Position numbers and translations under genes: made by a program
Notes under the pieces: model-generated
The model's input: the letters and a program-made list of their open reading frames with translations, nothing else
Told to the model about the DNA's origin: nothing
Database searches by the model: none
DNA from: Octopus bimaculoides
Taxonomy: Eukaryota
Assembly (NCBI RefSeq): GCF_001194135.2
Contig: NC_068999.1
Location: forward strand, 43,452,578-43,486,333
DNA: 33,756 nt
Direction of reading: 5' to 3'
Shown: piece by piece, positions 4,827 through 19,896 of the stretch
Layout of the letters: every line of letters begins with the position of its first letter
Numbering within the stretch: the stretch's first letter is position 1

Positions 4827-5254
4827 GTCTACTATTTCTTTTCTTTTTTTTACTTTTTTTTTTCTGCTATTCCTCTCTTTCATACTTTGACCCTATCCTG
4901 TGCACTTGTACCACTACTCTGCATGTCCACCTGTGCTTCGTCTGCACTTTTATAACCACTCCTGCTGCTNNNNNNNNNNNNNNNNNNNNNNNNNNNNNNN
5001 NNNNNNNNNNNNNNNNNNNNNNNNNNNNNNNNNNNNNNNNNNNNNNNNNNNNNNNNNNNNNNNNNNNNNNNNNNNNNNNNNNNNNNNACTGCTGCTCCTG
5101 CTGCTGTCATCTACTACTACTGCTGCTGCTACCGCTGCTGCCGCCAACACCACCACCACCACTGCCACCACCACCTCTGTTGTTGACCCTTCTTGTCTTC
5201 TGAAAAAAAAAACAAAACAAAAAAAAAAACTTTCCAAATGACCACCACCCACAG
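4827..5254 (+). promoter_or_regulatory. extended AG-exclusion zone with polypyrimidine tract and CUG/YGCY cluster upstream of E1 (candidate splicing regulatory element)
   Basis: No AG in the sequenced bases 4827-4969 and 5088-5252 (308 nt; a 118-nt N gap lies between). Pyrimidine tract about 4833-4881, about 12 YGCY in 5088-5166, TGCATG at 4920-4925, branch-point-like TTGAC with A at 5186. Confidence 0.6.
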
Positions 5255-5367
5255 TGCCGATGATTGCCAACACTAACCAGCCTGCATCGATGGCAAGTGC
5301 TGCTACTAGCACCACCTCACTTCCTACTAATGCTGCTAGTGTAAATTACTTTGATGAGAACAACCAG
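5255..5367 (+). CDS. mbl: muscleblind internal coding exon E1 (113 nt, phase 1 to phase 0), Ala/Thr/Ser-rich C-terminal-region exon
   Basis: Acceptor cccacAG at 5253-5254 is the first AG after an in-frame TGA at 5239-5241. Donor CAG|GTAGTA at 5368. Translation (x)TG CCG ATG...AAC CAG = VPMIANTNQPASMASAATSTTSLPTNAASVNYFDENNQ. It resembles the recalled human MBNL1 segment [32 protein letters not shown] in start, end and phases, and splices in frame to E2. Confidence 0.85.
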
Positions 5368-8977: not shown

Positions 8978-10380
8978 NNNNNNNNNNNNNNNNNNNNNNN
9001 NNNNNNNNNNNNNNNNNNNNNNNNNNNNNNNNNNNNNNNNNNNNNNNNNNNNNNNNNNNNNNNNNNNNNNNNNNNNNNNNNNNNNNNNNNNNNNNNNNNN
9101 NNNNNNNNNNNNNNNNNNNNNNNNNNNNNNNNNNNNNNNNNNNNNNNNNNNNNNNNNNNNNNNNNNNNNNNNNNNNNNNNNNNNNNNNNNNNNNNNNNNN
9201 NNNNNNNNNNNNNNNNNNNNNNNNNNNNNNNNNNNNNNNNNNNNNNNNNNNNNNNNNNNNNNNNNNNNNNNNNNNNNNNNNNNNNNNNNNNNNNNNNNNN
9301 NNNNNNNNNNNNNNNNNNNNNNNNNNNNNGTGTGTGTGTGTGTGTGTGTGTGTGTGGAGAGAGAGAGAATTTTAACTCTTTTTTTTGTTTTTTTTTTGTT
9401 TTTACTTGTGCTCTTCCACCCAGATTGATATATTCCACCCGTTCAACCACCCAAGAGTCCTTTCTGCCAACAAAATGTCTGACATGTTTTCTTTTTGTTT
9501 TCTCTCACATATTTTTTTTTACTTGGCTTCTCTGGTTTATCCTACCCCCCCCCCCGTCGCCATTCTAACTGCAGTGGCTTCTCTTTTTCCTTCTATTGTT
9601 ATTAGACTACATTTGAGCGAGGGGTAGAAGGCAGGGGGGAGAGAGACTGAGAGAGATGATGGATGGTGATGCTGATGAGATGTGGTGTGGGAATATGGTG
9701 GCTAAGCAGATGAGTGTATGGCAGAGAAGAACCTTGTGAGTGTGTGTGTGTGTGTAGTGTAGTGTCGTGGTGATAGTGNNNNNNNNNNNNNNNNNNNNNN
9801 NNNNNNNNNNNNNNNNNNNNNNNNNNNNNNNNNNNNNNNNNNNNNNNNNNNNNNNNNNNNNNNNNNNNNNNNNNNNNNNNNNNNNNNNNNNNNNNNNNNN
9901 NNNNNNNNNNNNNNNNNNNNNNNNNNNNNNNNNNNNNNNNNNNNNNNNNNNNNNNNNNNNNNNNNNNNNNNNNNNNNNNNNNNNNNNNNNNNNNNNNNNN
10001 NNNNNNNNNNNNNNNNNNNNNNNNNNNNNNNNNNNNNNNNNNNNNNNNNNNNNNNNNNNNNNNNNNNNNNNNNNNNNNNNNNNNNNNNNNNNNNNNNNNN
10101 NNNNNNNNNNNNNNNNNNNNNNNNNNNNNNNNNNNNNNNNNNNNNNNNNNNNNNNNNNNNNNNNNNNNNNNNNNNNNNNNNNNNNNNNNNNNNNNNNNNN
10201 NNNNNNNNNNNNNNAATGGATGAGGAGTGATTACGGGGGGGGGATGGGTAGGGGCATGTTTTTCCTTCTAGGGGGCAGCTCTCCATTTATTCAAGCCTGA
10301 CAGATAGATGGTTAAATAGATAGAGAGGGAGAGATGTAGATGGAGAGGGAGAGAGATAGATGGAGAAGGAGTGATAGATA

Positions 10381-11022: not shown

Positions 11023-11170
11023 CATCGTCATTTAAATCTGCTTTCCATGCTGGCATGGGTTGGGCAGTTTGACAAGCTCCAACGCCAACCACTTTGCAGA
11101 GCATACTCTTCCTAACACCAACCACTTTATAGAGTGTAGTGAGTACTTTTTTGTGCCACGGGCACTAGTG
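11023..11170 (-). mobile_element. SINE family B, internally deleted copy
   Basis: CATCGTCATTTAAATCTGCTTTCCATGCTGGCATGGGTTGG...AACGCCAACCAC. Confidence 0.6.
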
Positions 11171-14296: not shown

Positions 14297-14590
14297 CATT
14301 CGAGCGAGATCGTTGCCAGTACCACTGGACTGGCTCCTGTGCAGGTGGCACGTAAAATACACCATTTCGAGCGTGGCCATTGCCAGTACCCACCTGACTG
14401 GCCTTCGTGCCGGGTGGCACGTAAAAGCACCCACTACACTCTCTGAGTGGTTGGCGTTAGGAAGGGCATCCAGCTGTAGAAACTCTGCCAGATCAGATTG
14501 GAGCCTGGTGTAGCCATCTGGCTTACCAGTCCTCAGCCAAATCGTCCAACCCATGCTAGCATGGAAAGCGGACGTTAAACAATAATGATG
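14297..14590 (+). mobile_element. SINE family B with GGAAGGGCATCCAGC core and (GAT)n-type tail
   Basis: GGCGTTAGGAAGGGCATCCAGCTGTAGAAAC...AGCATGGAAAGCGGACGTTAAACAATAATGATG, near-identical to the inverted copy at 17928-18142. The core recalls the Nin-domain SINE motif (from memory). Confidence 0.8.
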
Positions 14591-16315
14591 GTTATAAACA
14601 TGCACAGTTTGTTTATTAAACTATATGTAACATTTTTTAGGTTGATGGGGTGGGGGTGGGGGCTAAATATTCCTTGTCTTGGTTTTTCTTATATCACTCG
14701 ATGTTCTTTTTTTCTTTTTATGGTTTTTGTCTTTTATCGTCATTCTTGAAGATAACTGTTACCAATGTGCATATGTGCATGTATGTATCACGTATGGCAG
14801 CATGCACACATTAGCACAATCAAACCTCCAGTGGCATCCACATGACATACTAATACCTTCAGACTCACACACATACATACGCACTATTTGTATTCTCGTT
14901 TGTGGTTCCATATTCCGTATTTGTGCGTGCGTGTGTGAATTTTTTTCTTTTGATATATCTATCCATTTTCCCCAAAATGTTGCTATCCCATTATTAACAC
15001 ATCACTATTTGTATATCTACCTCTGACATAGCAATGTGTTGCTATCTATTTTTTAATGCATTGGCTTTTTTCTTCGTTTTTTTTTTTTTCTTTTTGCTAT
15101 GAAGTCATTGCTAAATCGTTGCTGACATGTTGCCATTTAGTTTTGATTTCATTGTCCAACATTACTTTGTGTCATCCTATTGTGTGTTGCTATTTAATTG
15201 TCAACACCTTTGGTTGCTGTCCACTTGACACTTGTCTATTAACCTGTTAGCAACACATTACTAATGCTGAGCCTACTGTCTTTGCTGAATGCTTATCTGT
15301 TATTCAAATTTTGATGTTTAGTTACCTCCATCTTTTTAGTTAACATGTTTAACTAATTTGGTTAAAACCTCATTGCTACCAACTCTTCAGATCAATCAGT
15401 CTTCATGTAATAACATAGTCAAGTTAATTACATTTTAATTGAGTTTGCCTCTTCATTACTAACAAGTTCCTGTTTAATTAGCAACATCTACATGAAGAGG
15501 GCACTCAGTTGTCTAGGTTCTATCAGCGATGTTATATAGAACATATCTTGTCTGGTCTATACTCTATTACCAAATTGGCTGCTTTGTTGCTAATGGGTTT
15601 CTGTTTAATTAGCAACATTTGGGGATTAATGGTGGGGGTGGCTGATGAATGTGAAGGCATTTGGTTGTTACACTTCTGTTGTCATAGATACTTCATGTAG
15701 CATTTTTATCTTTTTAAAATTCTTCTCCGAACATTTTCTTTGCTGTTAACATGTGGCTACTTCATTTTGATCATGATACTTCACTAGCAACATCACTGCC
15801 TCATAGCAACCACATATTGCTGTTGCAGTTGCTATATATATTTATTTGATAGATTGATTGTATTTTTGTTTGTTTATAAATATTTTGGTGAGGTTGTATA
15901 TGTTTGCAATTTCTTAAAATGAATTTTCTTTTTGTTTTATACACACACACACACCACATCCATGAGAAATCAAAATTAAATGGGTACGCATGTATTTTTT
16001 ATGTGTGTGTGTGTGTGTGTGTATGGGATGCTGTGTGCGTATTAGCATATTCTTGATTAGTTCATTCTGTAATTAGCAAAATTAACAAGATTCCTTAATA
16101 TAGGAATTTCTTATATACATGTCCTCACCCATCTCTTTCTCTCTCTCTCTTACATATTTGTGCATTTCTCTGCCTCTCTCCCTTTCAAACTGTTGTTCTT
16201 TCTTTCTGTCTCCTCCTCTCTTTTTGCTCTCTTTCTCTCTCTCTCTCTCTCTCTCAAATGAAATAATGTTCCAACTCAAAGAATACATTTCTTATGTTTA
16301 TCCTTTCTCTTCCAG

Positions 16316-16350
16316 TTGCTGGACACCCTCCCACTGTGCCGCGATTTTAA
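16316..16350 (+). CDS. mbl: alternative reading frame of E2 (phase-1 entry): xAGHPPTVPRF*
   Basis: TT GCT GGA CAC CCT CCC ACT GTG CCG CGA TTT TAA read from the sequence. Resembles the recalled Drosophila MblC C-terminus FTGHPPGVPRF*. Would be used if E1 is skipped from a phase-1 upstream donor, which is outside the window or not identified. Confidence 0.6.
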
Positions 16351-16400
16351 GTCTAGCCAGTGTAACAGGCCACAATGTAAGTTTGTGCATCTAATGGAGG
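16316..16400 (+). CDS. mbl: muscleblind coding exon E2 (85 nt, phase 0 to phase 1), CCCH zinc finger C-X7-C-X4-C-X3-H
   Basis: Strong acceptor tttatcctttctcttccAG (16314-16315) and consensus donor G|GTAAGT (16401). Translation LLDTLPLCRDFKSSQCNRPQCKFVHLME+G, in frame with E1 and E3. Confidence 0.93.
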
Positions 16401-16590
16401 GTAAGTTTGTTTTCACTCATCACTTTCTATTTATCCATCTACAACTCTATTCATCTTTCTCTCTACATTATTTTTGATAATACAGTTCTATATTTAAGAG
16501 ATGAATTATGTACATTATTTACATTTGGTAGACGGAAACTGAAAGAAGCCCATCGTATATATGTATACATATGTGTGTGTTTGTCCTCCT

Positions 16591-16790
16591 AGCATTGCTT
16601 GACAACCGATGCTGGTGTGTTTATGTCCCTGTCACTTAGCGGTTTGGCAAAAAGAGACCGATAGAATAAGTACTAGGCTTACAAAGAATAAGTCCCGGGG
16701 TCGATTTGCTCGACTAAAGGCGGTGCTCCAGTATGGCTGCAGTCAAATGACTGAAACAAGTAAAAGAGTAAAAAGAGTATTTGACGAATA
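16591..16790 (+). mobile_element. SINE family C 3' portion
   Basis: CATTGCTTGACAACCGATGCTGGTGTGTTTATG...GAATAAGTCCCGGGGTCGATTTGCTCGACT...AAGAGTAAAAAGAGTA short-repeat tail. Shares the GGGGTCGAT box with family A. Confidence 0.6.
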
Positions 16791-16849
16791 TTTGTCCTCA
16801 TTTTGTTTGTTAATTATTTTTGATGACAATTATCATTGCACACTATGGC

Positions 16850-17162
16850 ACTTTGTCAGTTACAACAACAAGGGTTCCAGTTGCGTGTAACCCTTAATGT
16901 AGTTCTCGGGGAGATTCAGCATGACACAGTGTGTAACAAGGCTGGCCCCTTTGAAATACAGGTACCACAGAAACAGGAAGAAAGACTGAGAGAAAGTTTT
17001 GGTGAAAGAGTGCAGCAGGGTTCGCCACCATCCCCTGCCGGAGCCTCGTGGAGCTTTAGGTGTTTTCACTCAATAGACACTCACAGCGCCCAGTCTGGGA
17101 ATCGAAACCGCGATCCTATGACTGCGAGTCTGCTGCCCTAACCACTGGGCCATTGCACCTCC
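16850..17162 (-). mobile_element. tRNA-headed SINE with well preserved pol III A and B boxes
   Basis: Reverse strand begins GGAGGTGCAATGGCCCAGTGGTTAGGGCAGCAGACTCGCAGTCATAGGATCGCGGTTTCGATTCCCAGACTGGGCG (A box TGGCCCAGTGG, B box GGTTTCGATTCC), followed by a non-tRNA body. Confidence 0.75.
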
Positions 17163-17214
17163 TCTATAATTGCAGAAGACCAGAAATGTATGGGACAGGG
17201 AACCTTCAGTGGGA

Positions 17215-17410
17215 TTTGAACTCAGAATGTAAGAACAAATAAAAATACTGCAACGCATTTTGTTCACTGCTCTTTTGTAAATTCCTCATAAACAATTGCA
17301 AAATTTAACTTGAATCTGGAGATGTTTCTGTTGAACTTAAAACATAAAGACAGACGAAATACCGCTAAGCATTTCGCCCGGCGTGCTAACATTTCTGCCA
17401 GCTCTGTTAC
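17215..17410 (-). mobile_element. two adjacent 5' head fragments of family A SINE
   Basis: Reverse complement of GAGCTGGCAGAAATGTTAGCACGCCGGGCGAAATGCTTAGCGGTATTTCGTC, plus a second GAGTTCAAATCCC head. Confidence 0.6.
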
Positions 17411-17925
17411 TGCTGCTGTTCTGGCCTCATTCCTGCATCTCCGCCCATCTCATCTCCTTTCCTTGTCAATGCTCCTTTACCATGTGGTTTTAAGGCACCC
17501 TGCTGCTATTTCCCCACTGAGGCTTACATTTTAGTGCCACCAGACAGTCACTTTCTCAATCTTATCTGAGTTCCAGCCTCTGCATCTTATTTCGTCACTG
17601 ACCTTGTTGATGCCCATTGTTGTCTCCACTGTGTCATTTTGGACTCTGTGCAGACCGATTAATCGGAAGTGTTCCAGCCATAACCATCCAGTCTTGATAG
17701 TTTCTAGAACTATATTATCGTCTTTTAGGATGACAGGATATGTTTTAGGGATAGATTTGACTGCTTTTTCCTCTCCAGCTTCTTCAACCATCTAGCAATT
17801 CTTTCTGCTGTTGCATGGATTTAGACTCTGTGCGAACACGTGATCAGTATTGCTCAACCTATAATAGCACACGTAGTTCTCAGTGACAGATGTCCAGCAG
17901 CATGATAACCGCCAAATCTCCTGTC
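17410..17925 (-). mobile_element. decayed LINE (RTE-like) reverse transcriptase remnant
   Basis: Reverse-strand peptides YYRLSNTDHVFA (like GFR.GRSTTDHIF), KVSDEIRCRGW and CLKTTW*RSIDKE (like GRPKTTWRR.VEKE). Contains stops and large deletions. Confidence 0.45.
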
Positions 17926-17927
17926 AA

Positions 17928-18142
17928 CATCATCATCATCGTTTAACGTCTGCTTTCCATGCTAGCATGGGTTGGACAATTTGACTGAGGACTGATGAAA
18001 CCGGATGGCAACACCAGCCTCCAATCTGATTTGGCAGAGTTTCTACAGCTGGATGCCCTTCCTAACGCCAACCACTCAAAGAGTGTAGTGGGTGCTTTTA
18101 CGTGTCACCCGCATGAAGGCCAGTCAGGCGGTACTGTCAACG
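17928..18142 (-). mobile_element. SINE family B, inverted copy
   Basis: CATCATCATCATCGTTTAACGTCTGCTTTCCATGCTAGCATGGGTTGGAC...GCTGGATGCCCTTCCTAACGCC is the reverse complement of about 14378-14590. Confidence 0.8.
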
Positions 18143-18647
18143 ATATATAGAAATCTCAGTGACTATTCAGGCACTGGTGTCACTATATATAAAAACTTAC
18201 TTGGAAATATATGTGCGTGTGTGTACATATATATATACACACGCACGCACATTGTGTATGTGTGTGCGTATCAGACTCTTGGTTAATAACACTAATATTT
18301 TTGACATCTAAGCAAACTTTTGCAGTTAAAAGATCTTTTTTTAAATATTTACATCTTCATAGCATTTTTCTCTGATATCCAGTTGTGATGTCAACTCCCT
18401 TGTTTCTAGAAGTACACAAGATGCCTGAACAGGATTTGAACTTTTCACTTGTGTTTCTAAATTAACTGCAATAACACATATTTCCTTGGCCACAGACACA
18501 CGTATCTCAATAATTATTTATGGTTAAGCTTAATCAATGATTATTTATATTTAAAAGTTTGTAGATAAAAAATAAAATACGATGAATTATTTTTTTGGCA
18601 TTTGTCCATCTTCAAATACTTCTTAGCAACATCCAGCATATTAAGAT

Positions 18648-18700
18648 CATCATCATTGTTTTCATGTCTGCTTTTCCATGCTGGCATGAGTTGGATGAGA
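18648..18700 (-). mobile_element. family B 3' tail fragment
   Basis: CATCATCATTGTTTTCATGTCTGCTTTTCCATGCTGGCATGAGTTGGATG. Confidence 0.55.
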
Positions 18701-18809
18701 TTTGTTGCAATGTATCTAAAGGAAAATTTTTTAGGTTTTCTTGAAATACTATTGTGGATCTCCAATTTACTATTTTATTGCATTGACCCCACAATTCTTA
18801 TATGGGCCC

Positions 18810-19122
18810 CAGCTGAGAACCACCAGTGTAAACTGAAAGAAGCCTGTTGTGCATACATGCATGTGTGTATGCATGAGCGCTTGTCTCTTTGCTTTGACAA
18901 TGCATGACAGTTGTAAGTCAGAAGATCACACAAATAGTGAGTGTTCTTCATTTCCTGTGCACCACGACATGTCTGGTCATGAGGAAATATTACCTTACTT
19001 GGAAACAAGGTGAGGGTTAGCAACAGGAAGGTCATCTGGTTGTGGAAAACTTGCCGCAGTAAATTCCATCCATTCTAGGTGAGCATGGAAAAGCAGACAT
19101 TAAAATGACAATGATGATGATG
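18810..19122 (+). mobile_element. family B-related SINE ending about 75 nt before the E3 acceptor
   Basis: CAACAGGAAGGTCATCTGGTTGTGGAAAAC core variant and tail AGCATGGAAAAGCAGACATTAAAATGACAATGATGATGATG. Confidence 0.6.
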
Positions 19123-19195
19123 ATAATTCTTCATCGTTTTTATTACCTTTATTATCATTAATTTTTTTTTTAATTTTTTTTTTTACAACTTTCAG

Positions 19196-19210
19196 ATTAT
19201 GTTGAAGTGA
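19196..19210 (+). CDS. mbl: alternative reading frame of E3 (phase-0 entry after E2 skipping): IMLK*
   Basis: ATT ATG TTG AAG TGA. An E1-E3 junction gives ...ENNQ|IMLK*, resembling recalled human MBNL2 ...TANQ|IILK*. Confidence 0.55.
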   Translation: MMLK

Positions 19211-19332
19211 CGGAGGGCAAGGTGACTGTGTGCCGTGATTCAGTTAAGGGGAAGTGCCGAAGACACCTGTGCAAATACTATCACATCCCTGTTATATTAT
19301 CAGCCCTTGCTGCTCCCAACTTGACCACTTGA
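19196..19332 (+). CDS. mbl: muscleblind probable terminal coding exon E3, CCCH zinc finger C-X7-C-X4-C-X3-H plus short tail
   Basis: T-rich acceptor ttttttttacaactttcAG (19194-19195). G|AT TAT... = DYVEVTEGKVTVCRDSVKGKCRRHLCKYYHIPVILSALAAPNLTT, TGA at 19330-19332. The inter-finger linker VEVTEGKVTVC matches the MBNL-family pattern (VEVQNGRVTAC / TVTVC..CKYFH). Confidence 0.93.
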
Positions 19333-19440
19333 GAAGCAGCAGCAGCAGCAGCAGCAGCCGACCTACTACTACTACTACTACTACAGCAACTTTCTACTAC
19401 TTCTATTACAACTACATCTGCAACCACTATTACAACTGCA

Positions 19441-19483
<43 letters not shown>

Positions 19484-19558
19484 TTCTTACTGTTATTACT
19501 TCAGTGGACAGTGTTGTTGTTGTTGTTGTCGTCTTTGTTTTATTGCATCACTACAAGA

Positions 19559-19589
<31 letters not shown>

Positions 19590-19647
19590 TATTATTTTTA
19601 GTGGGGAGCCTACACTGATCATTCTAGACTCTCTTACTTTCTCATTC

Positions 19648-19679
<32 letters not shown>

Positions 19680-19896
19680 AGTATCTATCGATTTATCTAT
19701 CTACATGTCTGTCTATGTGAAAGGGGGATTAAGAAAAGAAAAAAAAAAGAAAAAAAGAAATAGGCTCAATCAATGTAGCAGTACTAATAGCTGCAGTAGT
19801 AGCAGTAATAGAAGTTAGTAGTAGTAGTTGTAGTAGTAGTAGTAGTAGTAGTAGTAGTACTAATAATAATAGTCTTACATGACTGACTGGGTGGGG
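19333..19896 (+). repeat. proximal 3'UTR compound microsatellite array: (CAG)7, (CTA/ACT)n, (GTT)n, (ATT)n, (TCTA)n, (TAG/AGT)n
   Basis: Visible directly after the stop codon. (CAG)7 at 19337-19357, ACT run about 19441-19482, TAG runs about 19816-19858. Confidence 0.85.

Follow-up and report, generated by a model that had tools for sequence, protein, structure and literature searches.

Background

Muscleblind (MBNL) proteins are usually described with one or two pairs of CCCH zinc fingers. In Drosophila, inclusion of the cassette exon AE3 shifts the reading frame of the muscleblind gene (mbl) and gives the MBL-O/P proteins 'two additional zinc fingers' (Pamudurti et al. 2022, PMC9352392). The mbl-C and mbl-O/P isoforms share the last exon, with photoreceptors as the main site of O/P expression and neurons and muscle as that of C (PMC9352392), and the MblC isoform is conserved across protostomes (Vicente-Crespo et al. 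2008). A canonical second tandem zinc-finger (TZF) pair encoded by one exon, as well as a divergent 'second TZF' in MblF, was described earlier (Irion 2012), while in the MBNL1 structure 3D2S Phe202 and Tyr236 intercalate at the GC step of the RNA (PMC9780971). Here, we analyzed a stretch of 33,756 nt from Octopus bimaculoides (GCF_001194135.2, contig NC_068999.1, positions 43,452,578 to 43,486,333; referred to as the window, in whose coordinates all octopus features are given). We consider it very likely that two exons of this stretch, which are shared 3'-terminal exons of octopus mbl, encode a third tandem zinc-finger domain (TZF3), an old paralogue of both canonical pairs (TZF1, or ZnF1/2, and TZF2, or ZnF3/4) and orthologous to the extra pair of Drosophila MBL-O/P, and that its translation is decided by a frame-switch cassette exon (E1).

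Two finger exons and the domain they encode

In a six-frame scan of the window, two MBNL-like CCCH fingers and no others came up, each on the + strand and, as had been noted from the letters alone, of the form C-X7-C-X4-C-X3-H and located downstream of E1. The first finger (16337-16390, CRDFKSSQCNRPQCKFVH) aligns with MBNL1 ZnF3 and ZnF1, the second (19231-19284, CRDSVKGKCRRHLCKYYH) with ZnF4 and ZnF2. The finger-A exon (16316-16400, +, 85 nt) reads in frame 0 as LLDTLPLCRDFKSSQCNRPQCKFVHLME plus one base and ends in phase 1. Its splice sites were read from the sequence (acceptor ttccag/TTG, donor GAGG/gtaagt), and the acceptor was confirmed by the cephalopod RNA contig L002 (Logan SRR27666063), in which similarity to the window begins exactly at TTGCTGGAC. 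A phase-1 intron of 2.8 kb follows (16401-19195, +, gtaagt...ctttcag), which contains dispersed repeats and is removed in L002; the gastropod Lottia has an intron at the same position between the two fingers. The coding part of the finger-B exon (19196-19332, +, acceptor ctttcag/AT) encodes (D)YVEVTEGKVTVCRDSVKGKCRRHLCKYYHIPVILSALAAPNLTT and closes with the stop TGA at 19330-19332, beyond which lies a 3' untranslated region (UTR) with (CAG)n and (ACT)n repeats. The order of these runs, (CAG)n and then (ACT)n right after the TZF3 stop, is the same in octopus (19333-19600) and in the cephalopod of L002.

Spliced together, exons A and B encode one tandem domain of 73 aa, LLDTLPLCRDFKSSQCNRPQCKFVHLMEDYVEVTEGKVTVCRDSVKGKCRRHLCKYYHIPVILSALAAPNLTT followed by the stop, which is 100% identical to the 74-aa UniRef entry A0A0L8GUY8 of O. 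bimaculoides. A chance resemblance is ruled out by this identity, by the matches to solved structures given below, and by the Pfam family zf-CCCH_10 (PF22628), whose profile scores 57.9 bits (cut-off 27, E 6.7e-16). All eight zinc ligands are intact, the frame is open, and the two fingers are joined by a linker of 15 residues, within the range of approximately 14-16 that defines a tandem domain. Peptides of the TZF3 frame include DFKSSQCNRPQCK and VTVCRDSVK, while AGHPPTVPRF belongs to an alternative +1-frame tail discussed below.

The only solved structures that were matched were the tandem fingers of MBNL1/2 (E 1.8e-13 to 1.5e-11), with all zinc ligands aligned. With the human domains (MBNL1 ZnF3/4 and ZnF1/2, PDB 3D2Q/3D2S, 5U6L, 3D2N, and 5U6H; MBNL2, 2E5S and 2RPP) the octopus pair shares the two CCCH fingers, the linker of 14-16 residues, the ligands and the aromatics of the GC step: the aromatic residue two positions before each His is conserved, CKFVH and CKYYH aligning with CRFAH and CKYFH (the equivalents of F202 and Y236), as are the arginines after the second cysteine of each finger. 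Because these residues are retained, GC-containing single-stranded RNA would be the expected ligand of TZF3, as it is of the canonical pairs. The octopus pair differs from the human domains in the shorter loop of its first finger (C-X4-C, not C-X6-C), in having DTLPxCRDF instead of LEVCRE(F/Y), in the L or V (not P) that follows the first-finger His, in its 15-residue linker, in the intron between the fingers, and in falling into a separate clade, at an identity of approximately 44-47%. Differences of this kind may also alter its RNA specificity, as suggested at the outset.

Place of the pair in the muscleblind gene

The upstream mbl exons of O. bimaculoides lie outside the window, and their order was taken from Lottia and their splicing from RNA contigs. 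In a 20-kb locus of Lottia gigantea, a TZF2 exon, an MQLQQ exon, an E1-like exon, finger A, and finger B follow each other on one strand within 10 kb. Its canonical ZnF3/4 is a single uninterrupted exon (...VCREFQRGTCTRQPSECRYAH...) approximately 8 kb upstream of the split pair, while the MQLQQ exon encodes ...YQHATMMQLQQQPFIPVT and the E1-like exon, of 101 nt, ends in ...IPSNATSVDYFDENKQ/gt. Octopus sinensis muscleblind isoform X3 carries ZnF1/2 together with a canonical ZnF3/4 (VCREFQRCTCTRQPNDCRYAH...), and in L002 the mbl exons, including TZF1, are spliced to finger exons A and B at precisely the predicted positions; fingers and mbl coding sequence are likewise joined in the RNA contigs L003 and L004. 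From the Lottia locus, O. sinensis X3, and the splicing of L002 it follows that the pair makes up a further, third domain encoded at the 3' end of mbl, and is neither ZnF3/4 nor a separate gene. The canonical pairs expected upstream by the original prediction are thus present in O. sinensis X3 (both) and in Lottia (ZnF3/4, with an E1-like exon between it and the split pair).

Phylogeny and distribution of the third pair

A word-indexed search recovered the pair, nearly unchanged, in short orphan models predicted for Lottia, Capitella, spiders, a tick, and a tapeworm. The profile built from these orphan-model pairs was run on 1.84 billion representative proteins and gave 1801 matches. The top-scoring proteins were 411-891 aa long and aligned with the profile in three places, most strongly in the C-terminal one. 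In such six-finger Mbl proteins, the spacing (residues between consecutive ligands) is 7-6-3/7-4-3 or 7-6-3 in pair 1, 7-6-3/7-4-3 in pair 2, and 7-4-3/7-4-3 in pair 3, so the predicted contrast with a first finger of C-X7-C-X6-C-X3-H holds for what is usual in pairs 1 and 2. Proteins with a third pair carry either pairs 1, 2, and 3 or pairs 1 and 3, and annotated proteins with the full set of six exist for Pinctada, Biomphalaria, a tick, a tephritid fly, a hemichordate, tunicates, corals, and a hagfish.

Named holders of a third pair included molluscs (Pinctada imbricata, Biomphalaria glabrata isoform X15), arthropods (Rhipicephalus, mbl isoforms of Eurosta and Drosophila simulans, Lepidoptera, Penaeus, and a barnacle), clade-I nematodes (Trichinella, Trichuris), ambulacrarians (the hemichordate Glandiceps and four echinoderms), tunicates (Ciona, Styela), corals (Stylophora, Pocillopora), a sponge (Sycon), and the hagfish Myxine glutinosa, whose MBNL1 isoform X5 has TZF1, TZF2, and TZF3. 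No counterpart of TZF3 turned up among jawed-vertebrate proteins, and hagfish was the only vertebrate found with it. In hagfish isoform X4, only the first TZF3 finger is present, followed by another tail (P0316 and P0038 are the Myxine proteins concerned, X5 included). Lamprey proteins (P0030) have three pairs as well, the extra one resembling a duplicate of TZF1 (7-6-3/7-4-3) and not TZF3. High TZF3-profile scores were also obtained for proteins with three or four MBNL-like tandem CCCH pairs from green algae and a euglenid (Closterium, P0031; Mesostigma, P0027; Eutreptiella, P0017), which may reflect homology, convergence, or contamination.

For the phylogeny, every tandem domain of 19 third-pair proteins was combined with the octopus pair, Lottia TZF2, a cephalopod TZF1, and the two human MBNL1 domains. 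The neighbour-joining tree resolved three clades that match the position of the domain in the protein (bootstrap 180/200 for TZF1, 107/200 for TZF2, and 190/200 for TZF3), and the octopus pair fell into the third, together with domains of a sponge, corals, molluscs, arthropods, echinoderms, tunicates, and hagfish. Its mean identity to the members of this clade was 0.65, compared with 0.47 for TZF1 and 0.44 for TZF2, so that the proposal of an additional pair (ZnF5/6) that does not cluster with ZnF3/4 agrees both with the tree and with the six-finger proteins annotated in many animals.

Cassette exon and proposed frame switch

E1 (5255-5367, +) measures 113 nt (2 nt and 37 codons), encodes VPMIANTNQPASMASAATSTTSLPTNAASVNYFDENNQ, i.e., (L/V)PMIANTNQPASMASAATSTTSLPTNAASVNYFDENNQ, and is bounded by the acceptor cccacag/TG and the donor CAG/gtagta. 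It ends with ...SVNYFDENNQ in phase 0, which fits the phase-0 start of exon A, and an E1-included protein would end ...SVNYFDENNQ-LLDTLPLCRDF...TZF3. The 3' half of E1 is conserved in Lottia (IPSNATSVDYFDENKQ, E 2e-5) and the peptide also in Mytilus, i.e., in both gastropods and bivalves; at 101 nt, the Lottia exon is, like the 113-nt exon of octopus, 2 mod 3 in length. In approximately 35 Mbl proteins from other phyla, the junction ...Y-x-D-x-N-x-Q/LLDTLPVC occurs, in its fuller form ...(S/H)V-x-Y-x-D-x-N-x-Q/LLDTLPVC(R/Q)DF, where E1 runs in frame into the fingers. E1 would act as the frame-switch exon and corresponds to Drosophila AE3. Apart from it and the two finger exons, no mbl-coding part was found in the window, with no MQLQQ/TYSS exon, canonical TZF2 exon, or alternative tail of the O. 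sinensis kind detected there.

The exon upstream of the switch ends in phase 1 in Lottia (...CCA GTA ACA T/gt) and in cephalopods (...TTT ACT T/). As E1 is 2 mod 3, a phase-1 upstream exon means that E1 inclusion sets the fingers in frame and E1 skipping gives a short tail. In the mechanism that we propose for octopus, the MQLQQ-type exon would end in phase 1; with E1 included, the finger-A exon would be read in frame 0 and TZF3 would be translated, while with E1 skipped the same exon would be read in the +1 frame, yielding the tail FAGHPPTVPRF and a stop and leaving the finger codons as 3' UTR of an MblC-type isoform. The stretch 16316-16350 (+) is thereby dual-coding: in the +1 frame, and with one carried-over T, it reads FAGHPPTVPRF with the stop TAA at 16348-16350, identical to the C-terminus of O. 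vulgaris muscleblind (P0203). The mbl open reading frame of L002 enters exon A in this frame and stops (...PYFT-FAGHPPSVPRF), and the same reading was found in six further RNA-derived proteins, in annotated O. vulgaris muscleblind, and in Argonauta (where the model ends just before the tail). Two RNA contigs from other taxa likewise end in AGHPPGVPRF and AGHPPSMPRF, and among the proteins retrieved the tail (A/T)GHPPxVPRF closes approximately 70 protostome Mbl isoforms from molluscs, a nemertean, a brachiopod, chelicerates, and insects. The octopus short form corresponds to the MblC isoform. O. sinensis X3 and X12 have the same upstream sequence through ...PYFT and continue with another tail (...PYFT-CVTSNLEYSAG...PSSTQS).

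Although Lottia and octopus separated very long ago, a single base distinguishes them over approximately the first 24 nt of the finger-A exon (TTGCTGGACACCCTCCCAGTGTGC in Lottia; 16316-16350 in the window, L001 10041-10075). Such near-identity would fit a double constraint from the overlapping frames LLDTLPVC and AGHPPSV. In cephalopods, the MQLQQ exon has a lineage-specific extension (L002 approximately 830-926; proteins P0195-P0204): the gastropod donor ACAT/gt reads ACATAT, and the exon runs on through a tandemly duplicated YSSTKLNEIQPYFT and is still spliced in phase 1. The possibility that the segment TYSSTKLNE... in L002 reflects intron read-through or an assembly artefact was considered and rejected, given its presence in RefSeq proteins of O. 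sinensis, O. vulgaris, and Argonauta.

The arrangement closely parallels that of Drosophila MBL-O/P. In the fly, and by our reading in octopus, a cassette near the 3' end changes the frame and adds a CCCH pair, an MblC-type short protein results without the cassette, and both isoforms end in one and the same exon and share its 3' UTR. Among dipteran proteins, D. simulans P0043 and Eurosta P0016 read ...YVIYTDANGQ/LLDTLPVCQDF..., have 7-4-3/7-4-3 spacing, and cluster with the octopus pair. The systems differ in the tail behind the fingers, which has 14 aa in octopus whereas the fly proteins have long disordered regions, and in the cephalopod extension of the upstream exon with its repeated YSSTKLNEIQPYFT; in addition, an E1-included product, documented for the fly, was not found for octopus in the collections searched. 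The MblF 'second TZF' (Irion 2012) is probably also such a system.

Probable translation of TZF3 in octopus and alternative readings

Several observations weigh against a TZF3 that is made and used in octopus. All cephalopod proteins and RNA contigs found skip E1, leaving the pair out of frame, and in a collection of 5.8 billion proteins no protein or RNA contig contained octopus E1 or E1 joined to the fingers. TZF3 is in none of the eleven recorded O. sinensis isoforms (X1-X10, X12). The MQLQQ/TYSS exon lies outside the window, and its phase in O. bimaculoides was deduced from congeners and L002. Some of the nucleotide conservation where exon A begins could be due to the overlapping +1-frame tail instead of TZF3, and an AlphaFold2 model based on an alignment of 11 sequences had low confidence (pLDDT, predicted local distance difference test, 54.8) and was not used, which leaves sequence alignment as the structural support. 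It could accordingly be argued that the exons are a cephalopod relic, i.e., the last 11 codons and the 3' UTR of an MblC-type isoform whose TZF3 is no longer translated, and the lack of any E1-containing cephalopod product on record is what such a relic would leave. We regard this as unlikely. Over the first 62 codons, compared between the window and L002, there are 19 differences, 14 of them at third positions of the TZF3 frame (dS, synonymous divergence, 0.38; dN, non-synonymous divergence, 0.05; dN/dS 0.13), and the same changes are mostly non-synonymous in the other two frames. This signal spans both exons, well past the 35-nt overlap; the eight zinc ligands and the open frame are intact, and in E1 the splice sites, the frame-shifting length, and the conserved peptide have all been preserved. 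Moreover, the equivalent Drosophila isoform is restricted to photoreceptors, and a similar restriction to certain cell types would explain absence from bulk assemblies, where such a product is easily missed. From the dN/dS of 0.13 together with the intact and conserved E1 we infer that octopus probably makes the E1-included isoform and translates TZF3.

A second alternative takes the annotation at face value and treats the pair as a separate small gene for a two-finger protein of approximately 74 aa (A0A0L8GUY8, LOTGIDRAFT_141088, and the models of spiders, tick, and tapeworm). Many genomes do hold orphan models of this kind, of 69-149 aa, but their N-termini are mutually unrelated, as expected of prediction artefacts, exon A begins at a splice acceptor, and no in-frame ATG precedes the first cysteine. 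Since L002, L003, and L004 also join the fingers to mbl coding sequence and the pair forms part of muscleblind proteins in RefSeq models from many phyla, an independent gene is very improbable.

That the pair is a canonical ZnF3/4 with diverged spacing is hardly credible: the best pairwise structure matches are marginally those of MBNL1 ZnF3/4 (53.3 vs. 51.1 bits for ZnF1/2) and finger B scores highest against ZnF4 in tblastn with human MBNL1, but O. sinensis has its own canonical ZnF3/4 (VCREFQRCTCTRQPNDCRYAH...), Lottia has a single-exon one upstream of the split pair in the same locus, the tree separates the two with 190/200, and, judged by the canonical TZF2 characters (one exon, as in Irion 2012 and Lottia, a C-X6-C first finger, VCMD in the second finger, then HPPxHLQAxIKA), the octopus pair is instead intron-split, with C-X4-C in the first finger and VCRD in the second, followed by HIPVILSA.

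Evolution and significance

A vertebrate counterpart of the cassette was sought in an alignment of the segment from YQQALA-MQLQQ to the fingers of octopus, Pinctada, Patella, scorpion, fly, hemichordate, and hagfish with the C-terminus of human MBNL1. Human MBNL1 ...TSVPFAATATANQ aligns opposite ...ASVNYFD-ENNQ, each up to the exon end, and the terminal Q is invariant. The vertebrate VPM...ANQ exon resembles E1 in following the YQQALA-MQLQQ exon, in ending in Q at phase 0, and in its SV-x-(F/Y) motif; in jawed vertebrates, unlike in octopus, a short non-finger tail follows it. Its length in human MBNL1, which we take to be 95 nt, is 2 mod 3, so its inclusion would shift the downstream frame as well. 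The likeness between E1 and the VPM...ANQ exon that had been noted at the outset therefore stands as regards colinearity, the terminal Q, and the SV-x-aromatic motif, while the sequence similarity itself is weak and of low complexity (E 0.19 within the window). On these grounds, it is plausible that the two exons are homologous.

A broader history can be put forward tentatively, and we would give it somewhat less than an even chance. TZF3 and its frame-switch exon may date from early animals, muscleblind having begun six-fingered, and jawed vertebrates may have lost the finger exons and kept the cassette as the 95-nt VPM...ANQ exon of MBNL1/2; the 35-nt start of finger A would then be a deeply conserved dual-coding sequence (LLDTLPVCRDF and AGHPPxVPRF with its stop), and TZF3 would give invertebrate isoforms a mode of RNA binding that is absent from the human-centred literature.

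Parts of this system are already known, as the switch has been published for Drosophila and RefSeq models with a third pair exist in many animals. In the searchable literature, we found no statement of how widely TZF3 is distributed (sponge to hagfish, but not detected among jawed-vertebrate proteins), of a third clade distinct from both canonical pairs, or of the MblC tail and the first TZF3 finger sharing one dual-coding exon. For octopus, the annotation is corrected: the 74-aa orphan 'C3H1-type domain protein' A0A0L8GUY8 belongs to muscleblind as its alternative C-terminal domain for RNA binding, and TZF3 is missing from the gene models of O. sinensis. More generally, the switch between mbl-C and mbl-O/P is not an insect-only feature and represents a conserved design in which one short cassette decides between an extra RNA-binding module and 3' UTR. 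A sequence-distinct third pair that is widespread in animals bears on the evolution of target specificity in this family of splicing regulators and offers a defined domain to test.

Repeats and gaps in the window

The window is draft eukaryotic sequence of low GC content, with 3726 undetermined bases (N) and many microsatellites, of which GT/CA and TA-rich ones are abundant throughout. The undetermined bases lie in several assembly gaps (e.g., approximately 4970-5087, just upstream of E1, and approximately 9770-10210), where small exons could hide. Within the intron between the fingers, a segment at approximately 17020-17150 (-) contains a tRNA T-arm-like motif (GGTTTCGATTCCCAGACTGG), which suggests a tRNA-derived short interspersed nuclear element (SINE), although ARAGORN detected no tRNA in the intron and Rfam nothing in 16000-19700. 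A dispersed repeat with the core CTGCTTTCCATGCTGGCATGGGTTGGA occurs at 11038-11064 (+), 14545-14571 (-), and 17950-17976 (+), three matches against zero expected, with more diverged copies near 18640-18700 and 19060-19125. The copies often lie beside (ATC)n, one of them in the inter-finger intron, and the family is probably an octopus interspersed element.

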